A stretch of 45,258 nt of DNA from Basidiobolus meristosporus CBS 931.73 (GCA_002104905.1 MCFE01000686.1:1-45258); one strand, 5' to 3'. Shown: positions 1 through 45,258, counted from the first letter of the stretch. Notes: a model not told the origin generated them from the sequence alone. Program-made: numbers and translations.

Positions 1-137
1 GCTATCTCTATATAAACTCCTTTGAACACTATCAATAAAGCATCAACCTTTTACCGGTTCATCAACTATTCAGATAACCTCTCTGATTCGTATTGGACAT
101 CCTCCGGTCCTCCTCCGCTTGCCCTCGATTCATAACA
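1..137 (+). mobile_element. LTR (distal part, cut by window start) of Ty3/gypsy insertion E1
   Basis: Matches the last 137 bp of the 310-bp LTR (e.g. 42137-42273), ends TCATAACA; 11 bp upstream of tRNA-Arg(ACG). Confidence 0.96.
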
Positions 138-148
138 ATATGCTATAA

Positions 149-221
149 GGGCGTATGGCCAAATGGATAAGGCGCCTGACTACGGATCAGGAGATTCCAG
201 GTTCGATCCCTGGTATGCTCG
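149..221 (+). tRNA. tRNA-Arg(ACG)
   Basis: Cloverleaf; CCTGA-CT-ACG-GA-TCAGG; GGTTCGATCC. Confidence 0.97.
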
Positions 222-429
222 TTATTTTGCAACCAACATTTTGTAGTCTACAACTATGAGAAAATGTTACATGCAATGAATCAATGAAATACCATTGAAG
301 GAGAGGTCAATTCATCAAGTGTGCCGAGTTCTTAGTCACAAAAGCATAACGTTGGTGAATAAAATATTGGCTTATCTAGCCAAACATAGAGTGTACTTAG
401 TCAAGAACGTATTTAAATTCAAAAAGGTT

Positions 430-501
430 TTCCCCATCGGGGAATCGAACCCCGGCCGTCTCGGTGAGAGCGAGAAATCCTAACCACTGGACCAATGAGG
501 A
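430..501 (-). tRNA. tRNA-Glu(CTC)
   Basis: Cloverleaf; TCTCG-CT-CTC-AC-CGAGA. Confidence 0.97.
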
Positions 502-795
502 CTTGTTGATGATACTACTATATGTTTATCTCTTACTGAACTCGCCATAGTAATAGCACTTACCTAGGCTTAGTGCAAACCGATTGCTACATTGTGAATC
601 TGGGCGTGTGCCTCCCAGTTGGAATCTTGCATTTTAGACCATCAATTCTATATCAAAACAGTAAGATACTCCGGAAGCAACGCAACTTAAGAGTGTATGT
701 ATTCGCATACCTCGCATACCAAGGGTTAAGAAGTGTGTAAAGTAGATGCCCTTTGCACATTACTAAATAAGCAAATATTTGTATGTTATCGAACA

Positions 796-869
796 GCTCG
801 CATAGCTCAGTTGGTTAGAGCGTGGTGCTAATAACGCCAAGGTCGCAGGTTCGACCCCTGCTGTGAGCA
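796..869 (+). tRNA. tRNA-Ile(AAT)
   Basis: Cloverleaf; TGGTG-CT-AAT-AA-CGCCA. Confidence 0.97.
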
Positions 870-1042
870 AATTTCCTTTTTCGTTTTTTCCTTGCTAACT
901 CATTTCCCTCAAGTTATCGTCGAAATAGATACATACACAAGTGTACTTTCACAAAGTTGTTGTTTAGTGGCTTTGTTATATTGTATGCTGATAAACACTT
1001 GGTAGAAATATACAGTTTATTCTTTATTTTATCGTAACTAAT

Positions 1043-1114
1043 TCTCAGATAGTATAGTGGTAAGTATCCCCGCCTGTCACGCGGGAGACCCGGGTTCAAT
1101 TCCCGGTCTGAGAG
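1043..1114 (+). tRNA. tRNA-Asp(GTC)
   Basis: Cloverleaf; CCCGC-CT-GTC-AC-GCGGG; T-run terminator. Confidence 0.97.
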
Positions 1115-1291
1115 CTTTTTACATGCCACTCTAAGTATAGTAGTATAGGCAGTAGCAATATTTTATTACTCGATAACCCGTTTATTTGAAAATACATAGA
1201 TAATGTTTTTACAACAGTATTTCTGCCTCATATATATATATATACATGTATGTGCCTCCGTTTGCATCTTGGCCCATAGTTATAGGATATG

Positions 1292-1362
1292 GATCTTTAC
1301 TGGGAATCGTACCAAAGATTTCACCCACACAAAGAGCGAGTATACCGCCAAATCCTCAAGGC
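1292..1362 (-). pseudogene. Decayed tRNA-Pro-like relic (also 6519-6589, 11746-11816)
   Basis: 31/47 identity by hand over the best-aligned part to tRNA-Pro of array B; same Asp-Ala slot and strand. Confidence 0.7.
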
Positions 1363-1473
1363 AATACCACCCTAACAAGATGCACAATACACTATCGGTC
1401 ATTTTACAAAAGTCCTCAAGAATACACCAGTACCTAGCAATATCACCACTACTCCAGAAAGCCTAATATAAAT

Positions 1474-1546
1474 GGGGGTCTAGCTCAGATGGTAGAGCGC
1501 TCGCTTAGCATGCGAGAGGCACTGGGATCGATACCCAGGTCCTCCA
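1474..1546 (+). tRNA. tRNA-Ala(AGC)
   Basis: Cloverleaf; CTCGC-TT-AGC-AT-GCGAG. Confidence 0.97.
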
Positions 1547-1663
1547 TTTTTGCCATGTTGCAGTAAAGAATTTTAATATTTGCAGCAATGCTATTTTCCA
1601 TTCGCTCAAAGCCATTCATTTATATTTATCTCGGGCATCAAAAAACTGTTAAAGTGTGTAAAA

Positions 1664-1735
1664 AGGACGCAGGCGGATTTGAACCACCGACCTATTGATC
1701 TGCAGTCAATTGCTCTACCACTGAGCTATACGTCC
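1664..1735 (-). tRNA. tRNA-Cys(GCA)
   Basis: Cloverleaf; ATTGA-CT-GCA-GA-TCAAT. Confidence 0.97.
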
Positions 1736-1859
1736 GTTACTTGGAGGGCTAATATTATACAGATTCACATATCCATGAATGCAACAATGATCTGTCAATC
1801 TCATCAATTGCCGTTTGAAAAGTAAATCGATCAAAAGCGGATCAAGGCAAAAGTATAAG

Positions 1860-1932
1860 CACCCAACGTGGGGGTCGAACCCACAACCTTGAGATTAAGA
1901 GTCTCACGCTCTACCGATTGAGCTAGCCGGGC
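1860..1932 (-). tRNA. tRNA-Lys(CTT)
   Basis: Cloverleaf; TGAGA-CT-CTT-AA-TCTCA. Confidence 0.97.
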
Positions 1933-2209
1933 CACGTGGCTGTATGTGTAAAAGCTTAGTTATATTCCTTTTGTTTGCTTGAAAAGACCTGCGACCATTA
2001 ATGCATAGCATAAAATCATACCACCTATATAGACATATATACTTCATCCCAAGGGATTTTCGAATATCTACGATATTTCACTGTGTGAAACAGACACCCA
2101 GAGCATGGTACTGCATATATTAGGAGAACCTGAGGTATAGAATCACCGCACAATTGTTGTTTTGTAATGCATAGTAACAACACAGAGTAAAAAAAATATC
2201 AAAAGAAAC

Positions 2210-2282
2210 TGCTCCCTGCCAGGATCGAACTGGCGACCTTCAGATTATGAGACTAACGCGCTGCCAACTGCGCTAAGGAAGC
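2210..2282 (-). tRNA. tRNA-Met(CAT), elongator
   Basis: CT-CAT-AA loop, G1:C72, TTCGA T-loop. Confidence 0.96.
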
Positions 2283-2451
2283 ATGTATACCGGGGATATC
2301 TTATATCAATATATTACAAGCTCCAGACTATTTTGCGTGATTTAATACCCCACGGTAGGGTAGCAATAATCATTCAGGAGGTACAACATTGTGCCAGCAA
2401 AATTCAAACAACATTAAAAATGAGCCTTTACAACGTAGTTGAATGCAAAAG

Positions 2452-2523
2452 TTCCCCATCGGGGAATCGAACCCCGGCCGTCTCGGTGAAAGCGAGAAAT
2501 CCTAACCACTGGACCAATGAGGA
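2452..2523 (-). tRNA. tRNA-Glu(TTC)
   Basis: TCTCG-CT-TTC-AC-CGAGA. Confidence 0.97.
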
Positions 2524-2866
2524 ATACATGAAAACATTCTAACTACAATGCTGTGTTAATGTGTAAGTGTAATGTTGCACAGCAGTTCGATCGTTAATAC
2601 ATCCCTTTGCTAGGTCTATTTCGCATGATGAAAATTGCACCCTTGGCAGTACAATAAGTTATTGTGTGTGAGTGCTTAGAAGCCTCTGGTCAAGGTAAAG
2701 GCTTCTAGCATATACGGCAAGTTCTTGGGCAAGATTTGATTGCGGATTCTGTAAAGAGAAGCAATAAGTATACATATTCTTCAACTCCTATTTAGTATTC
2801 ACACATTTTCATGGTATAAATGTAATAGCGACACTCATACATTTGAGGAGTCAGCAAAAGATTAGA

Positions 2867-2938
2867 TAGCAGCGAGAGGTTTCGATCCTCCGACCTCGGG
2901 GTTATGAGCCCCGCGCGCTTCCTCTGCGCTACGCTGCT
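2867..2938 (-). tRNA. tRNA-iMet(CAT), initiator
   Basis: A1:T72, GGG/CCC anticodon stem, ATCGAAA T-loop (eukaryotic initiator hallmarks). Confidence 0.97.
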
Positions 2939-3179
2939 TTGTTGAATATCTAAGACAAAGACGCCCCTTTGACCCTTTGGTAGGACTGTATTACAATCTG
3001 ATATTTTGACTGTGCCCATGCACGCATACCTCCAGTTTAAATAGTATACAAACTGTAACCATTCAAAAGGGTATGATTCACACCTCTGAAATGGCTCTTC
3101 CTACACAATCCTATAAAACACATGTCAAGCAACAAAAGACTCTTGATGCCGACCAGTAATCAGTACAAAAAGAGAAAGC

Positions 3180-3253
3180 CACCCCCGGTGGGACTCGAAC
3201 CCACAATCCTCAGATTAGAAGTCTGATGCCTTATCCAATTAGGCCACGGGGGC
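3180..3253 (-). tRNA. tRNA-Arg(TCT)
   Basis: TCAGA-CT-TCT-AA-TCTGA. Confidence 0.97.
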
Positions 3254-3412
3254 ATTTCGTTCTTGTTCCCTTTGTTTTGCGTATAGATGTAAACTAAATG
3301 AAGTACTATCCGGTGATTCCCTTGTGACTCTAGTGACTGTATTCTTATGACCGTCCAAATTTCTGCCAAACCTTAGCCAATTTTAAGTAACATTGGCTAA
3401 AAAAATAAAAAT

Positions 3413-3485
3413 TGCCGTCTCTGCGGATCGAACGCAGGACCTTCAGAACTTCAGTCTGACGCTCTCCCAACTGAGCTAAGACGGC
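3413..3485 (-). tRNA. tRNA-Phe(GAA)
   Basis: TCAGA-CT-GAA-GT-TCTGA. Confidence 0.97.
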
Positions 3486-3723
3486 TATACATTTGCTTGA
3501 ATATTGAGTATGAATTAGTTGGCTAATAGTGTAAGATAGTGTCATCACTACCTTGGGCAAGCCCTGTTTGCCTTAGTATCTGCAATACATCCCGTAGTCA
3601 TGGCATACTCTGGATAATAGTTATTTTAATGAATCGCAGTAACCCGTATGGATTTTGTACTACTTAGCCCCTTTGTAACTACTAAGGAGATATATCTGAT
3701 CAAGATTTGGTTGCAAGCGTATT

Positions 3724-3797
3724 GCTCTTGTGGCGCAATTGGCTAGCGCGTCTGACTGTTAATCAGGAGGTTGGTGGTTCAAGCCCACCCAGGAGCG
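3724..3797 (+). tRNA. tRNA-Asn(GTT)
   Basis: TCTGA-CT-GTT-AA-TCAGG. Confidence 0.97.
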
Positions 3798-4018
3798 ATT
3801 ACCTTTTGCTTGAAGCTTTAGCACTCCCTTTTTTGCCATTCGGCTGGAAACGGGTTAGGAGTCTGGGGTATATTTGTATGTGCCACACACATGTTACTGT
3901 CAACTATCTATTTTAATGAATGTACTTGAATACTGAAGCGAAGAGCTGCACCGCCATTATCCAAGGAGTAAAACTCAAAACTTCTCAGCCAACTAATGTA
4001 GCTGGGACAAAACAAGAC

Positions 4019-4104
4019 TCCGAACACCCGGATTTGAACCAGGGACCTAAAGATTGCTATGGTAACACTACAGTCTTCCGCTCTACCAACTGAGCTATGT
4101 TCGG
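4019..4104 (-). tRNA. tRNA-Tyr(GTA) with 13-nt intron (4055-4067)
   Basis: GAAGA-CT-GTA-G then TGTTACCATAGCA insert at canonical 37/38 position. Confidence 0.95.
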
Positions 4105-4204
4105 GAGTTCACGGGAGTGGGAACCAATATCAATGATAGACTAGATGTTTCAAATAATTGCAGCATTCCCATACATTCCTTTATAACATCTGGAACGTGA
4201 AAAT

Positions 4205-4287
4205 GGAGAGATGGCCGAGTTGGTCTAAGGCGTCACGTTAAGGCCGTGATCTCTTCGGAGGCGTGGGTTCGAATCCCACTCTCTTCA
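4205..4287 (+). tRNA. tRNA-Leu(AAG)
   Basis: TCACG-TT-AAG-GC-CGTGA; long variable arm. Confidence 0.96.
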
Positions 4288-4538
4288 TTAGTTTTTGCGC
4301 TCTTCTTTTTCCCGGTATTTCTCTTGACCTTTGGGATGTACACCACCGGTGATCAGGTAGAGCAACAATTTTATGACATGGCCACTTCACTATATGGATA
4401 GCCACTATGATTATGCTCAGTTTAGGCATTGATATGATTGATTTGCCCGCACAGCATTGATGGATATCTTGGCAAATCCCCACGCATACAAAAAAAACCA
4501 GCAGCAGCACCTACATTCAAGTAGAGCCGTTGGCAAAA

Positions 4539-4611
4539 TGCCTTCTGCCGGAATTGAACCAGCGACCTTCTGCTTACTAGGCAGACGCTCTGCCAACTGA
4601 GCCAAGAAGGC
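4539..4611 (-). tRNA. tRNA-Thr(AGT)
   Basis: TCTGC-CT-AGT-AA-GCAGA. Confidence 0.97.
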
Positions 4612-4712
4612 AATATGTCTGAGCGCACTAGATGGGCTCTATGAGGAAAATACCTAAGCAAGAGTCTTATTCTATAAAGCTATTTGGGGTGATAAACTGA
4701 TGTAGCACCAGA

Positions 4713-4779
4713 GCCATGATGTCAGAAGGTAGGGCGGCATGATTGTGCGCAACAACGATAGGTTCGAATTGCAGTTGGA
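4713..4779 (+). pseudogene. Possible decayed tRNA-His-like relic (also 9940-10006, 15167-15233)
   Basis: GCCATGAT...TTGTG-CGCAACAAC...GGTTCGAAT resembles eukaryotic tRNA-His(GTG) as recalled from memory; stems broken. Confidence 0.4.
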
Positions 4780-5178
4780 CATACCCTACGGAGTGGCTAA
4801 CCAGATGATAAACCGTAAGGCGGTTATGCCAAAAGTTTTGGCAGCCAGCAGTGTTGTTTTGAGGGGCAGTTTAGCCTTGATATTTTGCATTGATTAACTA
4901 ACCCTAATCAAAGGAGGAAACATGCACATTCCTGGAGCTTCGGGTATATGACTCGGCCATCCAAGTCCTTTTTCTGTTTTGTCAGCTTTATGGTGAGTAA
5001 GGTAAGAAGCAACACCTGCGTCCAAGCAGGCACATAACTCCTACTCTTGCCATTCCCAGCAAAACAGCAACGATACAGTAAGCCAGATGCAGCTAGCCAA
5101 CAAAAGAATGAAACGTATTATCTCATACGTCAAAGTATTGCTCAAAGAAAGGAAATCGCAAAGACACCTACAGCAAAA

Positions 5179-5249
5179 TGCATACTCGGGGAATCGAACC
5201 CCGGTCTACCGCGTGGCAGGCGGTAATTATACCACTAAACCAAGTATGC
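5179..5249 (-). tRNA. tRNA-Gly(GCC)
   Basis: ACCGC-CT-GCC-AC-GCGGT. Confidence 0.97.
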
Positions 5250-5375
5250 AATTACAATAGGGGGGCGGAAAGGTAGTTCATGATAACATTCAGGGGAAGC
5301 AGTGCGCAACTTTGGATGTCACCACCAAAGGCTAAAGAGATTCATAGTCTACCAGCTGGCAAGTATATGCTATAA

Positions 5376-5448
5376 GGGCGTATGGCCAAATGGATAAGGC
5401 GCCTGACTACGGATCAGGAGATTCCAGGTTCGATCCCTGGTATGCTCG
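5376..5448 (+). tRNA. tRNA-Arg(ACG)
   Basis: Copy in unit A2. Confidence 0.97.
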
Positions 5449-5656
5449 TTATTTTGCAACCAACATTTTGTAGTCTACAACTATGAGAAAATGTTACATG
5501 CAATGAATCAATGAAATACCATTGAAGGAGAGGTCAATTCATCAAGTGTGCCGAGTTCTTAGTCACAAAAGCATAACGTTGGTGAATAAAATATTGGCTT
5601 ATCTAGCCAAACATAGAGTGTACTTAGTCAAGAACGTATTTAAATTCAAAAAGGTT

Positions 5657-5728
5657 TTCCCCATCGGGGAATCGAACCCCGGCCGTCTCGGTGAGAGCGA
5701 GAAATCCTAACCACTGGACCAATGAGGA
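5657..5728 (-). tRNA. tRNA-Glu(CTC)
   Basis: Copy in unit A2. Confidence 0.97.
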
Positions 5729-6022
5729 CTTGTTGATGATACTACTATATGTTTATCTCTTACTGAACTCGCCATAGTAATAGCACTTACCTAGGCTTAG
5801 TGCAAACCGATTGCTACATTGTGAATCTGGGCGTGTGCCTCCCAGTTGGAATCTTGCATTTTAGACCATCAATTCTATATCAAAACAGTAAGATACTCCG
5901 GAAGCAACGCAACTTAAGAGTGTATGTATTCGCATACCTCGCATACCAAGGGTTAAGAAGTGTGTAAAGTAGATGCCCTTTGCACATTACTAAATAAGCA
6001 AATATTTGTATGTTATCGAACA

Positions 6023-6096
6023 GCTCGCATAGCTCAGTTGGTTAGAGCGTGGTGCTAATAACGCCAAGGTCGCAGGTTCGACCCCTGCTGTGAGCA
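6023..6096 (+). tRNA. tRNA-Ile(AAT)
   Basis: Copy in unit A2. Confidence 0.97.
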
Positions 6097-6269
6097 AATT
6101 TCCTTTTTCGTTTTTTCCTTGCTAACTCATTTCCCTCAAGTTATCGTCGAAATAGATACATACACAAGTGTACTTTCACAAAGTTGTTGTTTAGTGGCTT
6201 TGTTATATTGTATGCTGATAAACACTTGGTAGAAATATACAGTTTATTCTTTATTTTATCGTAACTAAT

Positions 6270-6341
6270 TCTCAGATAGTATAGTGGTAAGTATCCCCGC
6301 CTGTCACGCGGGAGACCCGGGTTCAATTCCCGGTCTGAGAG
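6270..6341 (+). tRNA. tRNA-Asp(GTC)
   Basis: Copy in unit A2. Confidence 0.97.
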
Positions 6342-6700
6342 CTTTTTACATGCCACTCTAAGTATAGTAGTATAGGCAGTAGCAATATTTTATTACTCGA
6401 TAACCCGTTTATTTGAAAATACATAGATAATGTTTTTACAACAGTATTTCTGCCTCATATATATATATATACATGTATGTGCCTCCGTTTGCATCTTGGC
6501 CCATAGTTATAGGATATGGATCTTTACTGGGAATCGTACCAAAGATTTCACCCACACAAAGAGCGAGTATACCGCCAAATCCTCAAGGCAATACCACCCT
6601 AACAAGATGCACAATACACTATCGGTCATTTTACAAAAGTCCTCAAGAATACACCAGTACCTAGCAATATCACCACTACTCCAGAAAGCCTAATATAAAT

Positions 6701-6773
6701 GGGGGTCTAGCTCAGATGGTAGAGCGCTCGCTTAGCATGCGAGAGGCACTGGGATCGATACCCAGGTCCTCCA
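6701..6773 (+). tRNA. tRNA-Ala(AGC)
   Basis: Copy in unit A2. Confidence 0.97.
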
Positions 6774-6890
6774 TTTTTGCCATGTTGCAGTAAAGAATTT
6801 TAATATTTGCAGCAATGCTATTTTCCATTCGCTCAAAGCCATTCATTTATATTTATCTCGGGCATCAAAAAACTGTTAAAGTGTGTAAAA

Positions 6891-6962
6891 AGGACGCAGG
6901 CGGATTTGAACCACCGACCTATTGATCTGCAGTCAATTGCTCTACCACTGAGCTATACGTCC
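6891..6962 (-). tRNA. tRNA-Cys(GCA)
   Basis: Copy in unit A2. Confidence 0.97.
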
Positions 6963-7086
6963 GTTACTTGGAGGGCTAATATTATACAGATTCACATATC
7001 CATGAATGCAACAATGATCTGTCAATCTCATCAATTGCCGTTTGAAAAGTAAATCGATCAAAAGCGGATCAAGGCAAAAGTATAAG

Positions 7087-7159
7087 CACCCAACGTGGGG
7101 GTCGAACCCACAACCTTGAGATTAAGAGTCTCACGCTCTACCGATTGAGCTAGCCGGGC
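7087..7159 (-). tRNA. tRNA-Lys(CTT)
   Basis: Copy in unit A2. Confidence 0.97.
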
Positions 7160-7436
7160 CACGTGGCTGTATGTGTAAAAGCTTAGTTATATTCCTTTTG
7201 TTTGCTTGAAAAGACCTGCGACCATTAATGCATAGCATAAAATCATACCACCTATATAGACATATATACTTCATCCCAAGGGATTTTCGAATATCTACGA
7301 TATTTCACTGTGTGAAACAGACACCCAGAGCATGGTACTGCATATATTAGGAGAACCTGAGGTATAGAATCACCGCACAATTGTTGTTTTGTAATGCATA
7401 GTAACAACACAGAGTAAAAAAAATATCAAAAGAAAC

Positions 7437-7509
7437 TGCTCCCTGCCAGGATCGAACTGGCGACCTTCAGATTATGAGACTAACGCGCTGCCAACTGCGC
7501 TAAGGAAGC
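7437..7509 (-). tRNA. tRNA-Met(CAT), elongator
   Basis: Copy in unit A2. Confidence 0.96.
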
Positions 7510-7678
7510 ATGTATACCGGGGATATCTTATATCAATATATTACAAGCTCCAGACTATTTTGCGTGATTTAATACCCCACGGTAGGGTAGCAATAATCAT
7601 TCAGGAGGTACAACATTGTGCCAGCAAAATTCAAACAACATTAAAAATGAGCCTTTACAACGTAGTTGAATGCAAAAG

Positions 7679-7750
7679 TTCCCCATCGGGGAATCGAACC
7701 CCGGCCGTCTCGGTGAAAGCGAGAAATCCTAACCACTGGACCAATGAGGA
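7679..7750 (-). tRNA. tRNA-Glu(TTC)
   Basis: Copy in unit A2. Confidence 0.97.
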
Positions 7751-8093
7751 ATACATGAAAACATTCTAACTACAATGCTGTGTTAATGTGTAAGTGTAAT
7801 GTTGCACAGCAGTTCGATCGTTAATACATCCCTTTGCTAGGTCTATTTCGCATGATGAAAATTGCACCCTTGGCAGTACAATAAGTTATTGTGTGTGAGT
7901 GCTTAGAAGCCTCTGGTCAAGGTAAAGGCTTCTAGCATATACGGCAAGTTCTTGGGCAAGATTTGATTGCGGATTCTGTAAAGAGAAGCAATAAGTATAC
8001 ATATTCTTCAACTCCTATTTAGTATTCACACATTTTCATGGTATAAATGTAATAGCGACACTCATACATTTGAGGAGTCAGCAAAAGATTAGA

Positions 8094-8165
8094 TAGCAGC
8101 GAGAGGTTTCGATCCTCCGACCTCGGGGTTATGAGCCCCGCGCGCTTCCTCTGCGCTACGCTGCT
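8094..8165 (-). tRNA. tRNA-iMet(CAT), initiator
   Basis: Copy in unit A2. Confidence 0.97.
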
Positions 8166-8406
8166 TTGTTGAATATCTAAGACAAAGACGCCCCTTTGAC
8201 CCTTTGGTAGGACTGTATTACAATCTGATATTTTGACTGTGCCCATGCACGCATACCTCCAGTTTAAATAGTATACAAACTGTAACCATTCAAAAGGGTA
8301 TGATTCACACCTCTGAAATGGCTCTTCCTACACAATCCTATAAAACACATGTCAAGCAACAAAAGACTCTTGATGCCGACCAGTAATCAGTACAAAAAGA
8401 GAAAGC

Positions 8407-8480
8407 CACCCCCGGTGGGACTCGAACCCACAATCCTCAGATTAGAAGTCTGATGCCTTATCCAATTAGGCCACGGGGGC
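8407..8480 (-). tRNA. tRNA-Arg(TCT)
   Basis: Copy in unit A2. Confidence 0.97.
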
Positions 8481-8639
8481 ATTTCGTTCTTGTTCCCTTT
8501 GTTTTGCGTATAGATGTAAACTAAATGAAGTACTATCCGGTGATTCCCTTGTGACTCTAGTGACTGTATTCTTATGACCGTCCAAATTTCTGCCAAACCT
8601 TAGCCAATTTTAAGTAACATTGGCTAAAAAAATAAAAAT

Positions 8640-8712
8640 TGCCGTCTCTGCGGATCGAACGCAGGACCTTCAGAACTTCAGTCTGACGCTCTCCCAACTG
8701 AGCTAAGACGGC
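8640..8712 (-). tRNA. tRNA-Phe(GAA)
   Basis: Copy in unit A2. Confidence 0.97.
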
Positions 8713-8950
8713 TATACATTTGCTTGAATATTGAGTATGAATTAGTTGGCTAATAGTGTAAGATAGTGTCATCACTACCTTGGGCAAGCCCTGTTTGCCT
8801 TAGTATCTGCAATACATCCCGTAGTCATGGCATACTCTGGATAATAGTTATTTTAATGAATCGCAGTAACCCGTATGGATTTTGTACTACTTAGCCCCTT
8901 TGTAACTACTAAGGAGATATATCTGATCAAGATTTGGTTGCAAGCGTATT

Positions 8951-9024
8951 GCTCTTGTGGCGCAATTGGCTAGCGCGTCTGACTGTTAATCAGGAGGTTG
9001 GTGGTTCAAGCCCACCCAGGAGCG
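8951..9024 (+). tRNA. tRNA-Asn(GTT)
   Basis: Copy in unit A2. Confidence 0.97.
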
Positions 9025-9245
9025 ATTACCTTTTGCTTGAAGCTTTAGCACTCCCTTTTTTGCCATTCGGCTGGAAACGGGTTAGGAGTCTGGGGTATAT
9101 TTGTATGTGCCACACACATGTTACTGTCAACTATCTATTTTAATGAATGTACTTGAATACTGAAGCGAAGAGCTGCACCGCCATTATCCAAGGAGTAAAA
9201 CTCAAAACTTCTCAGCCAACTAATGTAGCTGGGACAAAACAAGAC

Positions 9246-9331
9246 TCCGAACACCCGGATTTGAACCAGGGACCTAAAGATTGCTATGGTAACACTACAG
9301 TCTTCCGCTCTACCAACTGAGCTATGTTCGG
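9246..9331 (-). tRNA. tRNA-Tyr(GTA), 13-nt intron
   Basis: Copy in unit A2. Confidence 0.95.
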
Positions 9332-9431
9332 GAGTTCACGGGAGTGGGAACCAATATCAATGATAGACTAGATGTTTCAAATAATTGCAGCATTCCCATA
9401 CATTCCTTTATAACATCTGGAACGTGAAAAT

Positions 9432-9514
9432 GGAGAGATGGCCGAGTTGGTCTAAGGCGTCACGTTAAGGCCGTGATCTCTTCGGAGGCGTGGGTTCGAA
9501 TCCCACTCTCTTCA
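9432..9514 (+). tRNA. tRNA-Leu(AAG)
   Basis: Copy in unit A2. Confidence 0.96.
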
Positions 9515-31836: not shown

Positions 31837-31848
31837 GCTCAGTACTAA

Positions 31849-32158: not shown

Positions 32159-32169
32159 TACTCCCACAC

Positions 32170-35556: not shown

Positions 35557-36518
35557 AGGCTCCAGTGTGTGGGGTAGTGTGCACCTTGTTCAGTGATTGG
35601 TTGACTACCAATAGGTATGTGGTTATTGGCTTTGAGGCCTGTAGTAGTTCTTGAGTGACCAATTCTGTGGTTGACAGCCCTTCTGAAGTGTATGGCATCA
35701 TATCTTTCTGCCAGTTCCATAGCCTCTACTAGGGTTTTGGGGTCTTTGTATTCAATTTCCCATCTAGTGTTGGATTTCAGGCCTCTTAGGTATTGCTCAA
35801 GTAGTTCAGTATCAGGCATGTTTTGAATTTCCATACTAAGCAAGTTAAACTGCTCATTGTACTCTTGAACAGACTTGGCTTGAAAGAGTTTGGACAGTTT
35901 TTCTCTTGCCATTCTATCAGCATTGATAGGTGTAAACCTCTTTCTCAATGCTTTAACAAAGTCAGCCCAGGAGGCTATGGGTGGAAAGATGCCCCTATTC
36001 ATTCCTTGAATGTGAAGTTTCCACCACATGGTTGCTTCCTTTCTGAAAAGTGAACAGGCATAATGTACTTTGACTTCTTCAGAGTCATCTGAGAAGTATA
36101 GGTACTGCTCTACTTCAAATATCCAAGTCTCTAGAGTGGCAGTGTGTCTTTTGCCTTCAAAGATGTTGGGTTTCTGAAGTTTCAGATTTGTTGCTCTATA
36201 TTGTTTTGTGAAGTCCAGAGAGCCTTGCCCATCTTCTCCAAGATTCAAGGAATTGGGAGGCACCGCAGGTCTTACAGATGAGGCTTCACCCTCTCTCTGT
36301 ATACCTTGACCAGTAAACCATGATCTCTGGGTGTTCACAAAATGTAAAGAGTCCAAGTCTGTCTGCCTACCCATTCTTGGGTCCAGACTAGGGAGGGCCG
36401 CAGGCTCAGTTGTGTGGGACTGTCCTTGACCGGCTAACTCAGCAACTTGTTGTTCAAGACTCTCAATATAGGCCAACATTTCTTCTGAAGAGCTAAATTT
36501 TGGCTTTTCTTCACTCAT
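35547..36518 (-). CDS. gag: Gag N-terminal part, frameshifted at G4 run 35571-35574 (G5 in E3; C5 in E5)
   Basis: Matches E3 Gag up to ...GAHYP then diverges. Confidence 0.9.
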
Positions 36519-36688
36519 TTTGTTTTTGGGTATTGTTTGATTTGCGGTAGGCGGGTGTGTTTACCAAGGGGGCTGGTTCTCTGGCAGAATTGACTGGGTA
36601 CTGTTTTTTTTCTTTTTTTGAGTGAAACGGAGGGTTTCTCTGGGAGGTTGGGAGGGTCTCGGGCAGGTACGGAGGGTATCTCTGGACA

Positions 36689-36868
36689 ATTGGAAGAATA
36701 TCTGGGAGATCGGAAGAGTTTCTGGGAGATCGGAAGAGTTTCTGGGAGATCGGAAGAGTTTCTGAGAGATTGGAAAAGTTTCTGGGAGATCGGAAGAGTT
36801 TCTGAGAGATTGGAAAAGTTTCTGGGAGATCGGAAGAGTTTCTGAGAGATTGGAAAAGTTTCTGGGAG
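36689..36868 (-). repeat. 20-bp tandem repeat x9 in 5' leader of E4
   Basis: Same as in E3 and E5. Confidence 0.95.
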
Positions 36869-36915
36869 GTACGGAGGTTTTTGTTTTTTGGAGATCGGAG
36901 GTTCGCTGCTACCAA

Positions 36916-37225
36916 TGTTATGAATCGAGGGCAAGCGGAGGAGGACCGGAGGATGTCCAATACGAATCAGAGAGGTTATCTGAATAGTTGATGAACCGGT
37001 AAAAGGTTGATGCTTTATTGATAGTGTTCAAAGGAGTTTATATAGAGATAGCCTCGGAGGGAGAGCTTCCGATAACGTAGGGCAAGCTTCCAAAAGGAGG
37101 GTTCAAGATGTATTAAATAACGTGTGTATCACTGAGTGCGATTGATCGTCTGTGTGGAATTCCAGGTGTTCGATCAGTAGTGTTCAAGTGATCGGTAGTG
37201 ACTAGTTAGGATTTAAATCATAACA
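36916..37225 (-). repeat. 5' LTR of E4
   Basis: 310 bp, next to PBS. Confidence 0.97.
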
Positions 37226-37605
37226 CTAAAACAAGATAAGTCACCTAACGAATCCATATAAAATCCTGATAACCTGTACCATTATTCGAGTGTTCTTTTT
37301 ACAGGATGCAGTAGCCACTACAAGATACCATTAAGCTAAGTAAAATAGAGCCAAGAAGATTAGGGGCCTACACGTATTTTTGGACGATTACAGACTGAAA
37401 ATCTGATATGATGGTCAAGGCTGAGCAGCAAAAGATAGGGATTGCTTCGAACCATACCGTTTCATAAACGACGGTTTAATGAATCTTATTTTCATATATG
37501 AATTGTTGAAAAAATTTACTGCTAAAAAGTGCGTGTTGTTTGCAAGGAAAGCATTGCCGGCAGAATTTCTCAGTAGATACAAATCTTAAAAATCCTAAAA
37601 AGGTT

Positions 37606-37677
37606 TTCCCCATCGGGGAATCGAACCCCGGCCGTCTCGGTGAGAGCGAGAAATCCTAACCACTGGACCAATGAGGA
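37606..37677 (-). tRNA. tRNA-Glu(CTC)
   Basis: Same body as array A. Confidence 0.97.
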
Positions 37678-38203
37678 CTTGTTACATGTATGCTAATTGT
37701 TGTGAATGTTCATCTTTATTGTTTGACGATGTCCATAGGATAGCTTCACAGCGGCAATAACCACAAAATAGCTGAATCCTTTGGGCAATATCATATGCAT
37801 ACTATAGAATAATTAGGGGATATGCCTCTCTGTTCTTCTGGTTTAATCTCAAGGGAAAGGCTATTTAGGATAAGATTTACACTCTGATGGCAAAAACCAA
37901 CGCCATTGCTGACTCCAACCAAGTACATGTATTGGCGGTTTGTACTTTGTTACCGTGTAGACGGAGTTGTTTTGTTAAGATATTGAGCTCCGGATTATGA
38001 CTTATCATGGTAGGTTCGGGAGGGGGGAAACGGCTATCTTTTGGGTTAGTGCTCCTGAGAGTGACAAATCGCATCCATTATTTGTTTACTCTGGGAGTAT
38101 TTATAAATGTGAGGATTTGTGGTGCCATTATTCATATTCCAGAATTACTTTCAGTGGACGGTTTAGCGATTAGGAAGCTCTTAACTTTCTGGCCTTTCAA
38201 GTT

Positions 38204-38277
38204 GCTCGCATAGCTCAGTTGGTTAGAGCGTGGTGCTAATAACGCCAAGGTCGCAGGTTCGACCCCTGCTGTGAGCA
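38204..38277 (+). tRNA. tRNA-Ile(AAT)
   Basis: Copy in unit B2; empty target site. Confidence 0.97.
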
Positions 38278-38683
38278 TGTCTTTTTAAATGTTAAAGCGG
38301 TATGTTCTCATAAGCAATTACATACTATTCTTTTATATGGATATATCAACTGCGTGTGCTAATTGCCGATTAACTTTATACTCCTCGCTCAGCCATGAAT
38401 AAAAATCTGGTAGGAAAAGAACTATCATCATAGATACCCTTAGGAACCACTATTTGATCGAGTGTTACTTGTCAGCTCCAAGAACACTAGATCTCGTTAT
38501 ATTGTAGTCATCACCAGTAGATATATTTTTTAATAGGCCAGATAGCTGGTATTATTCATCGTTTTTGTTAAGACTGAGAAGGCATACGAAGATGCAATAC
38601 TGTCAAGTCAATACCGCCAAGAGCAGGAGATATAGACATGAAGTGAAGTCTAGCTACATAACGTTCTGATATTCGTCATCTAT

Positions 38684-38755
38684 TCTCGGATAGTATAGTG
38701 GTAAGTATCCCCGCCTGTCACGCGGGAGACCCGGGTTCAATTCCCGGTCCGAGAG
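38684..38755 (+). tRNA. tRNA-Asp(GTC)
   Basis: Copy in unit B2. Confidence 0.97.
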
Positions 38756-39099
38756 CTTTTTTTGGATTTCCTGTTTGCTTTCGAACCAAATTGAGAGTTC
38801 TACGAGTAAAGCCAGGCATTGATGTGTTTGACATGTTAACTAGCAAGGCGCTCTCAAACCTAAATATCCAAAGTATACACGGTCTTATGGATTATTATTA
38901 CACACTCGAAGCAATATTGTTTTAGAAAGTAGTATTCATTTCTCATAATATTTTGGCCACCAAATAAAATCGCAAATACAATCAAGCCTTATGATACTTT
39001 GCAAAACTTATGTATATCCATTTATCGTGCCTAAACTGGGTGGCTTAGCATTCTACCAAACAGATATACCATCCTTCTATCTAGTAGGATGCAGAAGAA

Positions 39100-39171
39100 G
39101 GGCTCAACTTGGAATTGAACCCAGGACCTCTCCCACCCTAAGGGAGGATTATACTACTAAACCATTGAGCC
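39100..39171 (-). tRNA. tRNA-Pro(AGG), possibly impaired
   Basis: Copy in unit B2, same two lesions. Confidence 0.85.
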
Positions 39172-39260
39172 ACATATGCCACTTGGGCTAACGATTGCTT
39201 GTTTGGCATTGAAAAGAGTGGCATTTACAACCTAATCCAATGACGTTACATAATATACAT

Positions 39261-39333
39261 GGGGGTCTAGCTCAGATGGTAGAGCGCTCGCTTAGCATGC
39301 GAGAGGCACTGGGATCGATACCCAGGTCCTCCA
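39261..39333 (+). tRNA. tRNA-Ala(AGC)
   Basis: Copy in unit B2. Confidence 0.97.
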
Positions 39334-39408
39334 CTTTTGCCAGGTATACTATATATTTTGCAAAATACAAACATAACAAACGTTAGAACAATAAAACAAA
39401 TGGTAAAA

Positions 39409-39480
39409 AGGACGCAGGCGGATTTGAACCACCGACCTATTGATCTGCAGTCAATTGCTCTACCACTGAGCTATACGTCC
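39409..39480 (-). tRNA. tRNA-Cys(GCA)
   Basis: Copy in unit B2. Confidence 0.97.
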
Positions 39481-39561
39481 GTTAATTGACTAACCTTGAT
39501 TGTTTGATTGTATATTTTCAAAATACAATAGGATACCGGTATAAAAATTGCAAAAGATATG

Positions 39562-39634
39562 CACCCAACGTGGGGGTCGAACCCACAACCTTGAGATTAA
39601 GAGTCTCACGCTCTACCGATTGAGCTAGCCGGGC
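39562..39634 (-). tRNA. tRNA-Lys(CTT)
   Basis: Copy in unit B2. Confidence 0.97.
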
Positions 39635-39809
39635 CACGTGGTTGTTAGGAATTGTTATCACTTAAATTCCAACATGTTAATGCGAATATGCTAAATCTTT
39701 GTCGTAGCGTTTAAACCTCTTACAAAAGTAAATGAAAAACAGTATACTTTGAATCCATCGGAAAAGGTTTCTCTGTATATTTTGCATGAGAATATCAAAA
39801 AAAGATATT

Positions 39810-39882
39810 TGCTCCCTGCCAGGATCGAACTGGCGACCTTCAGATTATGAGACTAACGCGCTGCCAACTGCGCTAAGGAAGC
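39810..39882 (-). tRNA. tRNA-Met(CAT), elongator
   Basis: Copy in unit B2. Confidence 0.96.
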
Positions 39883-40009
39883 AATTTCTTTGTGGTTGAG
39901 GCAATACATATATTAGATTAAATATGTTGCGCCAAATAGTCAAGTGTTGTATTCGGCCCTAAAGCCATTGCTCTAAGGCTGTACAAACTCTGAAAATCAA
40001 AAGATAACC

Positions 40010-40081
40010 TTCCCCATCGGGGAATCGAACCCCGGCCGTCTCGGTGAAAGCGAGAAATCCTAACCACTGGACCAATGAGGA
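40010..40081 (-). tRNA. tRNA-Glu(TTC)
   Basis: Copy in unit B2. Confidence 0.97.
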
Positions 40082-40219
40082 CTTGTTGGATTAGAAGCGG
40101 TATGCACTTCTATAACAAAAATAGCGGCGTTTTGCTCTGCCAAATAGAATATAGGATATTTCTTGAGCAGACGATTTGATTAACTACGGTCATCATTAGT
40201 TCTATGATGGAAAAGTTTA

Positions 40220-40291
40220 TAGCAGCGAGAGGTTTCGATCCTCCGACCTCGGGGTTATGAGCCCCGCGCGCTTCCTCTGCGCTACGCTGCT
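40220..40291 (-). tRNA. tRNA-iMet(CAT), initiator
   Basis: Copy in unit B2. Confidence 0.97.
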
Positions 40292-40482
40292 TGAACGTTT
40301 AACATGAATGAATTAGACATATTATAGTGATTTACTGGCAGCAAAGCTTTGTAAAGCCGATGCCAGTTAACTATAGTCCAGAATAACCATACCAATCCAA
40401 TAGATTAGATGACATATAACACAACGAAAAAGTATTAGAACTGCCTTAACAACACATAAATATTACCAATCAAAGTAAAAAT

Positions 40483-40555
40483 TGCCGTCTCTGCGGATCG
40501 AACGCAGGACCTTCAGAACTTCAGTCTGACGCTCTCCCAACTGAGCTAAGACGGC
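40483..40555 (-). tRNA. tRNA-Phe(GAA)
   Basis: Copy in unit B2. Confidence 0.97.
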
Positions 40556-40953
40556 TATACAATTTCCTTAACGAATGGTATCAACATATATGCTACCTTA
40601 TTGAATCATTCAGTTCCAAATCCACCTATATATCTGTCACTCATGTATTGTATAAACGGAGTTAATATTAATTTCAAAGATTACTTGAATGTGGCTCATA
40701 GTGGTACCCTTTTAGCCCAGTCATTTGTCAGTAAGGTGTAAGCCTGTTGGCGCTCTTGTGGTGTAATTGGCCATCGAGTCGAGCTGTCAGCTGGAAAGTT
40801 GATGGCAATCTTTCCAATATCCTTATTCAAGCCAAGGACATAGAGGCTACAACTCAGCAAGTTGTACTCGGGACTTGTGAGAAAAAGAACTGGCGTATGG
40901 GATAATGAGCGCCTCAAAAATATATTTTGTAAATTTAATCATCAATAGTAAAT

Positions 40954-41036
40954 GGAGAGATGGCCGAGTTGGTCTAAGGCGTCACGTTAAGGCCGTGATC
41001 TCTTCGGAGGCGTGGGTTCGAATCCCACTCTCTTCA
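40954..41036 (+). tRNA. tRNA-Leu(AAG)
   Basis: Copy in unit B2. Confidence 0.96.
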
Positions 41037-41277
41037 TTCCTTTTAATACCCTCACCATTTTCCAATCACACACGATAATACTATAGGAGATGACATTACT
41101 CCATTATTTATTATCAGTTTTTAATTTTTTTAGATACATTACGGTCGTCAGCAACTATGGGGCCGAAAACAAATAGGACGGATAGTTCTATTCAAAAGAA
41201 GTGAAACTTGTAAGAATCAAACTCTAGGAGTTAAAAAGCTTTATAATGGGTTAAACTGGCTTAGAAAAGGAAAAAAA

Positions 41278-41350
41278 TGCCTTCTGCCGGAATCGAACCA
41301 GCGACCTTCTGCTTACTAGGCAGACGCTCTGCCAACTGAGCCAAGGAGGC
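41278..41350 (-). tRNA. tRNA-Thr(AGT)
   Basis: Copy in unit B2. Confidence 0.93.
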
Positions 41351-41882
41351 ATATACATGTAGGGTGGCGCTTAGTTAGCATATGTTTAAATGCTCATTCA
41401 ACACCCCATAGGTTGCTCCCCTTTGTATAATACAGTATCGCAACTGTGGCCAGTGGAGTTAGAGCACTCTATTCGGGTACTATAGATAGGGGTTCGACTT
41501 ACGACTGTCACTAGAGCTGGGGAGTTTGAATGTAGTGTCACTTCTAAACTGGTCATGCAAAATTTTTCGATATTCTGTTATGTTGTTTTTGGGCGCAGTC
41601 TGAATAAAATTGTTCTTGTTTCACTCGCCGACCCTAACCACCGACTCTGGGAGAGTATGGTGAAGGGATGATGAACTTTAGTTTGTAAGAGCCTTGGTAT
41701 TCTAAGTAAATGAAGAATATGGCAACATAGTTATCTCGAAGGACTACCACTTTTACCTTGGCAAGATAACCAGCTCCCACTTGAATCTGAATTTACAGTC
41801 TTCGTCTGTTATTAGAAGGTAAAGATAGAGGTTCTTGCAAGGGAACGAGTGAAGTGTAAAATTCTGTACTCTGGCTGCAAAA

Positions 41883-41953
41883 TGCATACTCGGGGAATCG
41901 AACCCCGGTCTACCGCGTGGCAGGCGGTAATTATACCACTAAACCAAGTATGC
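41883..41953 (-). tRNA. tRNA-Gly(GCC)
   Basis: Copy in unit B2; LTR 10 bp upstream. Confidence 0.97.
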
Positions 41954-41963
41954 GCTCAGTACT

Positions 41964-42273
41964 TGTTATGATTTAAATCCTAACTAGTCACTACCGATCA
42001 CTTGAACACTACTGATCGAACACCTGGAATTCCACACAGACGATCAATCGCACTCAGTGATACACACGTTATTTAATACATCTTGAACCCTCCTTTTGGA
42101 AGCTTGCCCTACGTTATCGGAAGCTCTCCCTCCGAGGCTATCTCTATATAAACTCCTTTGAACACTATCAATAAAGCATCAACCTTTTACCGGTTCATCA
42201 ACTATTCAGATAACCTCTCTGATTCGTATTGGACATCCTCCGGTCCTCCTCCGCTTGCCCTCGATTCATAACA
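41964..42273 (+). repeat. 5' LTR of E5
   Basis: 310 bp; TATATAAA 42145-42152, AATAAA 42170-42175. Confidence 0.97.
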
Positions 42274-42274
42274 T

Positions 42275-42286
42275 TGGTAGCAGCGA
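42275..42286 (+). promoter_or_regulatory. Primer binding site, tRNA-iMet
   Basis: TGGTAGCAGCGA 1 nt after LTR. Confidence 0.95.
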
Positions 42287-42320
42287 ACCTCCGATCTCCA
42301 AAAAACAAAAACCTCCGTAC

Positions 42321-42500
42321 CTCCCAGAAACTTTTCCAATCTCTCAGAAACTCTTCCGATCTCCCAGAAACTTTTCCAATCTCTCAGAAACTCTTCCGAT
42401 CTCCCAGAAACTTTTCCAATCTCTCAGAAACTCTTCCGATCTCCCAGAAACTCTTCCGATCTCCCAGAAACTCTTCCGATCTCCCAGATATTCTTCCAAT
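42321..42500 (+). repeat. 20-bp tandem repeat x9 in 5' leader, degenerate units continue to ~42560
   Basis: Three 40-bp dimers then three monomers. Confidence 0.95.
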
Positions 42501-42670
42501 TGTCCAGAGATACCCTCCGTACCTGCCCGAGACCCTCCCAACCTCCCAGAGAAACCCTCCGTTTCACTCAAAAAAAGAAAAAAAACAGTACCCAGTCAAT
42601 TCTGCCAGAGAACCAGCCCCCTTGGTAAACACACCCGCCTACCGCAAATCAAACAATACCCAAAAACAAA

Positions 42671-45258
42671 ATGAGTGAAGAAAAGCCAAAATTTAGCTCT
42701 TCAGAAGAAATGTTGGCCTATATTGAGAGTCTTGAACAACAAGTTGCTGAGTTAGCCGGTCAAGGACAGTCCCACACAACTGAGCCTGCGGCCCTCCCTA
42801 GTCTGGACCCAAGAATGGGTAGGCAGACAGACTTGGACTCTTTACATTTTGTGAACACCCAGAGATCATGGTTTACTGGTCAAGGTATACAGAGAGAGGG
42901 TGAAGCCTCATCTGTAAGACCTGCGGTGCCTCCCAATTCCTTGAATCTTGGAGAAGATGGGCAAGGCTCTCTGGACTTCACAAAACAATATAGAGCAACA
43001 AATCTGAAACTTCAGAAACCCAACATCTTTGAAGGCAAAAGACACACTGCCACTCTAGAGACTTGGATATTTGAAGTAGAGCAGTACCTATACTTCTCAG
43101 ATGACTCTGAAGAAGTCAAAGTACATTATGCCTGTTCACTTTTCAGAAAGGAAGCAACCATGTGGTGGAAACTTCACATTCAAGGAATGAATAGGGGCAT
43201 CTTTCCACCCATAGCCTCCTGGGCTGACTTTGTTAAAGCATTGAGAAAGAGGTTTACACCTATCAATGCTGATAGAATGGCAAGAGAAAAACTGTCCAAA
43301 CTCTTTCAAGCCAAGTCTGTTCAAGAGTACAATGAGCAGTTTAACTTGCTTAGTATGGAAATTCAAAACATGCCTGATACTGAACTACTTGAGCAATACC
43401 TAAGAGGCCTGAAATCCAACACTAGATGGGAAATTGAATACAAAGACCCCAAAACCCTAGTAGAGGCTATGGAACTGGCAGAAAGATATGATGCCATACA
43501 CTTCAGAAGGGCTGTCAACCACAGAATTGGTCACTCAAGAACTACTACAGGCCTCAAAGCCAATAACCACATACCTATTGGTAGTCAACCAATCACTGAA
43601 CAAGGTGCACACTACCCCCACACACTGGAGCCTATGGACCTAGATGTTATGCAGAGCACACCAAGACCTTCTAAAGAGGAATGCTTCAAGCTTGGACTAT
43701 GCTTTTACTGCAAGGAACAGGGTCATAAAGTCAATGAATGCCCAAAGAGGCCATTACAAAGAGTATTCCAACTCTCCACTAAGGAGGAGGAGCACACAAT
43801 CAGCCTTGTTAAGGAGTATCAGAGGACTCAGAGCTTATATACTACCCCAAAGATGCTGAAACTCCCAGGGATTCTCAACAACAACCAATGTGTCTCTGTA
43901 CTCATTGACAGTGGAGCAACTGATGTCTACATTTCAAAAGATGTAGCTGATCAGATGAAGCTACAAACAATCCCTTGCCCCCCAATTCACATCCTCTGTG
44001 CCACCAAGGAATCAATTATAGTGAACAGCAGGACTGAACCCTTGACTTTACAAATCAGGGACTTCCAAGACACCATTTCCCCAATTATCATACCCCAAGC
44101 CAACTTTGAAATCAATGTGGGACAAACTTGGCTAAGAAAGCACAATCCTGACATAAACTGGCAGACTCAGGAAGTTGTAATCAACAAGGATGATGCAAAA
44201 TATCATCTGTCACCCAAACCAACCCTGGACAAAGGCAATGCACCAGAACACACCATATCAAAGAAACAGTTTGCCCACTCTATCAGACAGAATCCCAAAC
44301 TGTTGCACATGATAGCCTTTGCCAAAATCCAAGAGACCACAGAAGTGACAAATGACAGGCTCAAGACCTTGTTAGCAGAGTTTCAAGAGGTTTTTCCCAA
44401 GGAAATCCCTGCACTACCCCCAAGCAGAGAGATTGACCATGCCATAGAAGTAACAGATGATAAACCAAGAAACAGAGCCCCATATAAGTTCTCCCCAAAG
44501 GAAATGGAGACTTTGAAGGAAACATTGAAGGACTACCTGGCTAAAGGCTGGATAAAACCCAGTAAATCACCATGGGGAGCTCCAGTACTCTTTGCTCCAA
44601 AGAAGGATGGGAAGCTACGGTTCTGTGTGGACTACAGGGCCCTAAATGCAATCACTGTCAGAAATTCCTACCCATTACCAAGAATTGATGCCCTCTTTGA
44701 CCAACTGGGGAAGGCAAAGATATTCTCTAAAATAGACCTGGCATCTGGATATCACCAAATCAGAATTAAGCCTGAAGACACCTCTAAGACAGCATTCAAC
44801 ACAAGATATGGTCATTATGAGTTTGTTGTGATGAGCTTTGGCCTGACTAATGCCCCAGCAACATTTCAGACACTCATGAATAGCATCCTGGAACCATATT
44901 TAGAGAAATTTGTCCTGGTCTACTTAGATGACATTCTGATCTATAGTACCAGCATGGATGACCACATGAAGCACTTGAAGACAGTACTGGCTATACTAAA
45001 AAAGCACAAGCTATATGCACAACTTCCTAAGTGTGAATTCCTCACCAGATCAGTTGAATACCTTGGTCACATAATCTCAGATAAAGGACTACACATGGAT
45101 CCAGCCAAGATAGATGCTATCCAGAAATGGGAAGCCCCAAAGTCACTCACTGAAATGAGATCCTTCCTGGGACTTGCATCATATTACAGAAGATTCATCA
45201 GGGACTTTGCAACTATTGCAGCCCCCCTTACAGACTTGACCAAAAAAGAGAAAGACTA
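42671..45258 (+). CDS. gag-pol: Gag-Pol polyprotein, partial (open at window end)
   Basis: ATG at 42671 (MSEEKPKF...), reverse complement of E3 ORF; absent from track because no stop is reached. Confidence 0.95.

Follow-up and report, generated by a model that had tools for sequence, protein, structure and literature searches.

Ty3 of Saccharomyces cerevisiae is the textbook example of base-pair-precise targeting, a precision that has been ascribed to a chromodomain acting as a ruler. The long terminal repeat (LTR) elements reported to target genes that RNA polymerase III (Pol III) transcribes, i.e. Ty3, Ty3p, Tj1, Tca8, Tyl3, Ylt1, Tyl6, DGLT-A and Skipper-2, all had ascomycete yeasts or dictyostelids as their hosts in a 2018 review (PMC5911963). 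Among Ty3/gypsy elements, targeting of start sites is known from Ty3, Tj1, Tyl3/Ylt1/Tyl6, Tca8 and DGLT-A, with Ty3 inserting 1–4 bp from a start site that itself sits some 10 bp upstream of the tRNA's mature end (PMC5911963), and Tj1, which makes a 5-bp target-site duplication (TSD), inserting in one orientation 5–11 bp upstream of the tRNA's mature end (PMC4600332). Within the Ty3 integrase, an SH3 domain (residues 369–433) contacts TBP, while a chromodomain (residues 446–511), which is essential and sets the insertion position, contacts Brf1 and downstream DNA and thereby serves as a ruler (PMC8632968). For Rhizopus oryzae, LTR elements and tRNA genes have been described as co-localizing, at chromosome scale only (Ma et al. 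2009, PMC2699053), and a base-pair-level account of distance, TSD, integrase anatomy and mechanism for early-diverging fungi was not found in the literature searched. Here we analyze a 45,258-bp stretch of DNA from Basidiobolus meristosporus CBS 931.73 (hereafter the window), which is an entire contig (C1019) of an 89.5-Mb assembly in 1,366 contigs, and in which copies of a Ty3/gypsy (Metaviridae) LTR retrotransposon, labeled E0 to E4, are interleaved with two tRNA gene arrays, A and B (Table 1).

Insertions of this element fall within an interval of about 4 bp, located 9–12 bp upstream of mature tRNA 5' ends, independently of orientation, sequence and tRNA species. We interpret it as a young Ty3/gypsy family with an integration complex that is steered to the Pol III start region at tRNA genes, a reading to which we assign a probability of about 0.8. 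Within the window, ARAGORN called 80 tRNA genes, and self-BLAST combined with direct read-out of the junctions placed LTR ends at positions 137, 16194, 22186, 22699, 28076, 31849, 37225 and 41964. The gaps between LTR and mature tRNA measure 11 bp at tRNA-Arg-ACG (137/149), 11 bp at tRNA-Glu-CTC (16182/16194), 10 bp at tRNA-Ile (28076/28087; the ARAGORN start of this gene was one base too early, and the true start, GCTCGC, was taken from the array A copy), 12 bp at tRNA-Gly (31836/31849) and 10 bp at a further tRNA-Gly (41953/41964). TSDs are present on both sides of E2 (CTTT, 22695–22698 and 28077–28080) and of E3 (CTAA, 31845–31848 and 37226–37229), and the sequence past 22186 is identical to that from 37685 onward, where CATG occupies bases 8–11 upstream of an empty Glu-CTC site, implying an 11-bp gap for this insertion as well. 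Each of these gaps and duplications had been called in an original prediction made from the window sequence by itself, and all were reproduced here, as was its statement that tRNA bodies are left intact: the targeted genes remain whole. Even in arrays this dense in tRNA genes, only 320 of about 25,078 non-element positions (1.3%) lie 9–12 bp upstream of a tRNA gene, and the probability that five of five junctions would do so by chance is about 3e-10. Moreover, E3 and E4 adjoin the same tRNA-Gly paralogue in units that are 99.95% identical, with insertion positions 2 bp apart and in opposite orientations, and they therefore represent independent events.

The same spacing was found across the genome. 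LTR BLAST and two pattern searches for LTR termini returned 56 LTR starts and 47 LTR ends, the flanks of which (~700 bp per side) were scanned with ARAGORN and Rfam; several copies with one end off their contig were left out of the site count. At 25 of the 31 resolved insertion sites (5 in the window and 20 outside) a called tRNA gene has its 5' end 9–12 bp from the LTR end. The 20 independent sites outside the window involve Thr-CGT (4), Leu-CAG (3), Arg-CCT, Pro-CGG and Glu-TTC (2 each), and Lys, Asp, Arg-CCG, Thr-AGT, Ser-AGA, Leu-CAA and a degenerate tRNA seen by Rfam only (1 each). Two further sites lie 10 bp from tRNA-like sequence, one degenerate (C494) and one a 27-bp 5' fragment of tRNA-Ile (C768). 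This fragment (C768:4640-4680) is a duplicate of the tRNA-Ile 5' end, A box included, that sits between the LTR and a complete tRNA-Ile, leaving the full gene 37 bp from the LTR. Matching 4-bp TSDs were observed in 14 insertions, every one different, and the tRNA gene is faced by the 3' LTR in 16 cases and by the 5' LTR in 12. No base is conserved at positions -7 to -12 in 69 distinct empty upstream regions, drawn from the window and the fetched genomic flanks. The use of both orientations, the many tRNA species and the lack of a motif support positional rather than sequence recognition. What had been predicted on orientation, motif and the length of the TSD is likewise supported. Old solo LTRs (85–93% identity) show unchanged spacing, and the targeting habit is therefore not new.

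At eleven of the 20 outside sites, the ~700 bp per side show no tRNA gene other than the target, although the contigs reach lengths of up to 196 kb, and the target is therefore the tRNA gene and not the array. Arrays are hit as target-rich DNA rather than as a special niche, and the proposal that they provide an rDNA-like safe harbor for the element is not supported. As a separate observation on the 69 upstream regions, they are rich in A and T and poor in C from -28 to -33, with C making up only 3% at -28/-29, and are A-rich at -1 to -3; the former stretch may be an upstream promoter element, which an insertion would part from its gene.

The element measures 5,378 bp and has 310-bp LTRs of the TG...CA form, beginning TGTTATGA and ending TCATAACA. 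It carries a single 1,449-amino acid (aa) open reading frame (ORF) for gag, protease (PR), reverse transcriptase (RT), RNase H (RH) and integrase (IN), which ends 11 nt short of the 3' LTR and in which Pfam domains follow the order Ty3_capsid, RVP_2, RVT_1, RT_RNaseH, Integrase_H2C2 and rve, establishing the Ty3/gypsy identity that had been predicted. The primer-binding site starts 1 nt past the 5' LTR, with 12 nt complementary to the 3' end of initiator tRNA-Met (plus CCA), and a GGGAG-rich tract ahead of the 3' LTR provides the polypurine signal. The tRNA-Met gene at 2867–2938 begins AGCAGCG, as initiator tRNAs do. The tandem repeat in the leader of E2 is also present in E3 and E4, with two alternating unit variants, and its copy number varies in older copies (C1:146970, C703). 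LTR pairs are 100% identical in E2 and in E3, and these two copies are 99.96% alike, with a 1-bp length difference that leaves a broken 1,128-aa remainder of the ORF in E3. Among 11 full copies in the genome, nine have identical LTR pairs and seven retain the full ORF, five of them encoding an identical 1,449-aa protein. The family has been recently active, as the original prediction held.

The C-terminal 449 aa of the protein align best with the Ty3 polyprotein (PDB 7q5b) at an E value of 1e-25, and this alignment runs to Ty3 residue 1444, which we equate with integrase residue 433 at the end of the SH3 fold. An AlphaFold model based on 18 aligned clade members (mean predicted local distance difference test score, pLDDT, of 76) runs from an N-terminal extension through a zinc domain, the catalytic core and a long helix to an SH3 barrel, past which there is no further domain. 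Its best structural matches are the integrases of prototype foamy virus (PFV) and Ty3, with the fold comprising an N-terminal extension domain (NED), N-terminal domain (NTD), catalytic core domain (CCD) and C-terminal domain (CTD), in that order. The element protein has no Pfam match to the chromodomain PF00385. Some 11–19 residues past the SH3 domain, an invariant Trp, often within WY.P..R, is found in 18/18 aligned clade members, and the tail that contains it is perhaps a targeting peptide. In the model this tail (polyprotein residues about 1422–1449; 23023–23106, minus strand) is of moderate confidence (pLDDT 74–83) though it has no secondary structure.

The closest full-length proteins, with 44–55% identity from RT to IN, are from Calcarisporiella, Entomortierella, Rhizopus, Mucor, Lichtheimia, Absidia and Parasitella, as well as from metagenomes and Rotaria assemblies, while plant and algal chromoviruses show 36–41% identity. 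None of the listed fungal clade members has a PF00385 match; the listed plant and algal matches carry it. In a maximum-likelihood tree of these relatives with plant and algal chromoviruses, the elements of early-diverging fungi form a 100/100 clade apart from the chromoviruses. All four copies examined in Entomortierella parvispora have a 4-bp TSD and a TGGTAGCA primer site, and their 5' LTRs stand upstream of tRNA genes for Leu-CAA, Leu-AAG, Ser-AGA and Asn, at distances of 14, 15, 15 and 34 bp. In both Rhizopus delemar copies examined, 11 bp separate an LTR end from a tRNA gene, which is Arg-TCT in one and Glu-TTC in the other. Since tRNA-adjacent copies occupy three deep branches of the 100/100 clade, tRNA-gene targeting is suggested to be a trait of the whole clade. 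As a side observation, bdelloid Rotaria assemblies contain elements that are 51% identical in pol and nested in the fungal clade, located beside animal-type genes (HSP90, SMG1), with LTR pairs 95–97% identical and no tRNA neighbor; horizontal transfer and contamination are both possible origins.

Several findings weigh against guidance to the Pol III start region as we have framed it. Four resolvable sites have no recognizable adjoining tRNA gene (C846, with a clean TSD of GAAT, C16:11006, C534 and C824), and at Rfam gathering scores no 5S or U6 match was obtained in the flanks of these sites. At C846, a B-box-like stretch ~11 bp away on the minus strand, noticed by eye, was considered as a hidden tRNA target; relaxed ARAGORN settings called no tRNA in that orientation, and the site is counted as an exception. 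Only 28 aa follow the SH3 domain, leaving no room for a chromodomain, and because the chromodomain is absent the Ty3 mechanism cannot apply unchanged. Placing the insertions at the start site itself depends on the usual leader of ~10 nt (PMC5911963). Among the relatives, no tRNA gene was found in the 2.5-kb flanks of the Absidia, Lichtheimia and Rotaria copies, with one copy each being too few to judge these lineages. Finally, no RNA run contains the element sequence, and the activity established is recent rather than present-day.

The insertions show cDNA ends joined to cuts that are staggered by 4 bp, with a center some 8–10 bp upstream of where the mature tRNA begins, and initiator tRNA-Met primes reverse transcription. 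In the mechanism that we consider to fit best, integrase would be tethered to the factor complex on the internal promoter of the gene, with TFIIIB as the likeliest partner by analogy with Ty3. Because the chromodomain ruler is absent, we propose that contact would be made through the SH3-like C-terminal domain (on TBP, as in Ty3) together with the short conserved tail bearing the invariant Trp. The same integrase anatomy also bears on a different tether, in which another part of the Pol III machinery (TFIIIC, or a polymerase subunit, as AC40 is for Ty1) would hold the integrase, with the position being set by DNA shape or accessibility between TFIIIB and the start. The missing Brf1-contacting chromodomain of the Ty3 type and the Trp motif present throughout the aligned clade would both be compatible with such a tether, and for Ty1, short peptides from the integrase C-terminus can be enough to achieve Pol III targeting (PMC7459421). 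However, tethering of the Ty1 type spreads insertions over about 1 kb and not 4 bp (PMC5911963), and the elements known to land no more than a few bp from the start are all thought to use TFIIIB, so that we regard this alternative as unlikely.

Direct reading of tRNA-gene DNA by the integrase, e.g. of the A box, which lies about 20 bp away from where the element inserts, is a distinctly poorer explanation. The A-box distance is as constant as that to the tRNA 5' end, and the C768 insertion lies 10 bp from a fragment in which the A box is the only promoter box; at this site, however, the complete tRNA gene 27 bp further on could supply a B box for factor assembly. At least 12 tRNA species with differing 5' sequences are used, no motif occurs at or around the cut sites, both orientations are used equally, and no integrase of the retroviral type is known to read a distant motif, all of which argue against such recognition. 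Finally, an absence of any targeting, with random insertions filtered by selection or a single insertion copied along with its array, might be entertained given that tRNA arrays have been amplified in this genome and that one old LTR-tRNA-Thr pair has been duplicated (C798, C856), some copies having thus spread by duplication. Selection cannot yield a 4-bp interval, however, and copies with 100% identical LTRs keep this spacing, the tRNA species, TSD and flanks vary among more than 25 sites, and neighboring array units that are 99.95–100% identical are filled in one case and empty in another. The junctions are independent, and selection and array copying are therefore excluded. Guidance by the Pol III machinery, with TFIIIB as the probable partner, is the reading that we retain.

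The layout of the window is given in Table 1. The diverged paralogous unit of the B array (28077–31848 / 37226–41963) has 14 tRNA genes, which basically follow the order of the array A unit, and comparable tRNA clusters occur on many contigs of the assembly. Tandem tRNA arrays are known from Entamoeba (PMC2652664); no published description of fungal ones was found in a literature search that was not thorough.

Table 1. Coordinates of the elements, tRNA arrays and associated features in the 45,258-bp window
Feature	Position	Strand	Details
E0, final 137 bp of LTR	1–137	+	Contig begins inside element; LTR end faces tRNA-Arg-ACG (149–221), gap 11 bp
tRNA array A	138–16193		5,227-bp unit with 17 tRNA genes; 3.07 copies, mutually 100% identical
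Initiator tRNA-Met in array A	2867–2938	-	3' end matches primer-binding site of element
E1, palindromic copy	16194–22186		Left LTR 16194–16503, 11 bp from tRNA-Glu-CTC (16111–16182); right LTR 21877–22186, abuts B-array spacer
B-array spacer	22187–22698		512 bp, identical to 37685–38197; begins CATG, predicted TSD of lost partner insertion
E2, full-length element	22699–28076	-	5,378 bp; 3' LTR 22699–23008, 5' LTR 27767–28076, identical; TSD CTTT; 5' LTR 10 bp from tRNA-Ile (28087–28161)
E2 ORF	27369–23020	-	1,449 aa
E2 primer-binding site	27754–27765	-	
E2 polypurine tract	about 23009–23021	-	
E2 tandem repeat, 20-bp period	27469–27779	-	Fills much of leader, from primer-binding site to gag start codon
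B-array unit, tRNA-Ile to tRNA-Gly	28077–31848		13 tRNA genes
E3, full-length copy	31849–37225	-	5,377 bp; identical LTRs; TSD CTAA; 3' LTR 12 bp from tRNA-Gly-GCC (31766–31836)
Second B-array unit	37226–41963		Empty Glu-CTC site 37606–37688; empty Ile site about 38194–38203
E4, 5' part of copy	41964–45258	+	Opposite orientation; cut by contig end; 5' LTR 41964–42273, 10 bp from tRNA-Gly-GCC (41883–41953)

One copy in the window departs from the normal structure. E1 consists of two 3' halves (LTR plus about 2.7 kb) placed head to head and joined near 19185–19187, and its flanks are from different arrays, one from A and one from B. No Logan contig from four DNA runs of one study bridges the junction at 19185, although contigs cannot prove absence, and the short-read contigs that reach this junction from the right run on into normal element interior; the palindrome thus lacks short-read support and is not disproved. 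Three more inverted dimers are present in the assembly (C670:12549-21221, C1:157443-163747 and C216:4413-10504), each with two 3' or two 5' halves head to head, and inverted dimers are probably chimeras of long-read assembly. As E1 is probably chimeric, the adjacency of arrays A and B is insecure and may be artificial. Each outer junction of E1 nevertheless gives good, if single-ended, evidence of an insertion 11 bp away from Glu-CTC. The sixth LTR of the original prediction, ending at 22186, therefore keeps its CATG-based spacing of 11 bp, while 16194–22186 is a head-to-head palindrome and not a normal copy of the element.

Five full-length copies elsewhere in the genome (C1346, C494, C16, C1:146970 and C1361) have differing 4-bp sequences at their two ends, a sign that copies located at different tRNA genes have undergone exchange or were joined in assembly. 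In addition, an old solo LTR (88–89% identity) with a tRNA-Thr-like neighbor is found at both C798:52960-53270 and C856:44282-44592 with near-identical flanks, the pair being a segmental duplication later than the insertion.

More broadly, we tentatively suggest, at somewhat less than even odds, that a whole chromodomain-less Ty3/gypsy clade, present in Zoopagomycota, Mortierellomycota and Mucoromycota, inserts at the Pol III start region within ~4 bp, makes 4-bp TSDs, and does so by a structural solution other than that of Ty3, perhaps the SH3 domain with the Trp tail. If this were true, start-site targeting in fungi would be far older than the yeasts, or would have been invented separately with a minimal targeting peptide, and the system therefore bears on the ancestral versus convergent origin of the habit. 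A young, apparently intact family that equals the precision of Ty3 without a chromodomain, with relatives that behave alike in three early-diverging phyla, offers a natural comparison for learning which contacts an integrase needs in order to aim at the Pol III start site. Targeting also explains the tRNA clusters interleaved with LTR elements in this genome, and such interleaving is a practical cause of the fragmented and chimeric assembly encountered here.

Compared with the described systems, the element resembles Ty3 of Saccharomyces cerevisiae in the order PR-RT-RH-IN, the initiator tRNA-Met primer, the NED-NTD-CCD-SH3 layout of the integrase, and insertion in either orientation a few bp from the Pol III start with the gene left intact. 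It differs in its TSD, for which Ty3 has 5 bp, while each of the 14 clean cases here and 4/4 Entomortierella copies have 4 bp, in having one gag-pol ORF in place of a +1 frameshift, in an integrase identity of only about 23%, in a host from a different fungal phylum, and in the 28 aa that follow the SH3 domain where Ty3 has a vestigial chromodomain (446–511; PMC8632968). Tj1 of Schizosaccharomyces japonicus likewise inserts 5–11 bp upstream, and tRNA clusters fill up with its copies (PMC4600332); unlike the present element, it has a 5-bp TSD, a stop codon between gag and pol, and a single orientation, and hits 5S genes, whereas orientations here are 16:12 and no 5S insertion was seen in the flanks scanned. 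DGLT-A of Dictyostelium has a single gag-pol ORF as well, and likewise uses either orientation when inserting upstream of tRNA genes (PMC5911963, PMC5006619). It differs in a looser placement of 13–33 bp upstream, in the lack of intact copies in D. discoideum and in its amoebozoan host. The DGLT-A integrase, too, is not known to carry a chromodomain. Chromoviruses carry a C-terminal integrase chromodomain that is lacking here, and in contrast to array specialists of the R1/R2 kind, insertions of this element are not confined to one repeated array. The Ty3/gypsy elements of Rhizopus oryzae/delemar belong to the same clade (48% pol identity), with two copies 11 bp upstream of tRNA genes. The suggestion in the original prediction that the combination of features might be undescribed is not supported, since Ty3, Tj1, Tca8 and others target start sites (PMC5911963, PMC4600332) and the Rhizopus co-localization has been published (PMC2699053). 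The element adds a new fungal phylum to the known kind of LTR retrotransposons that target the Pol III start region.

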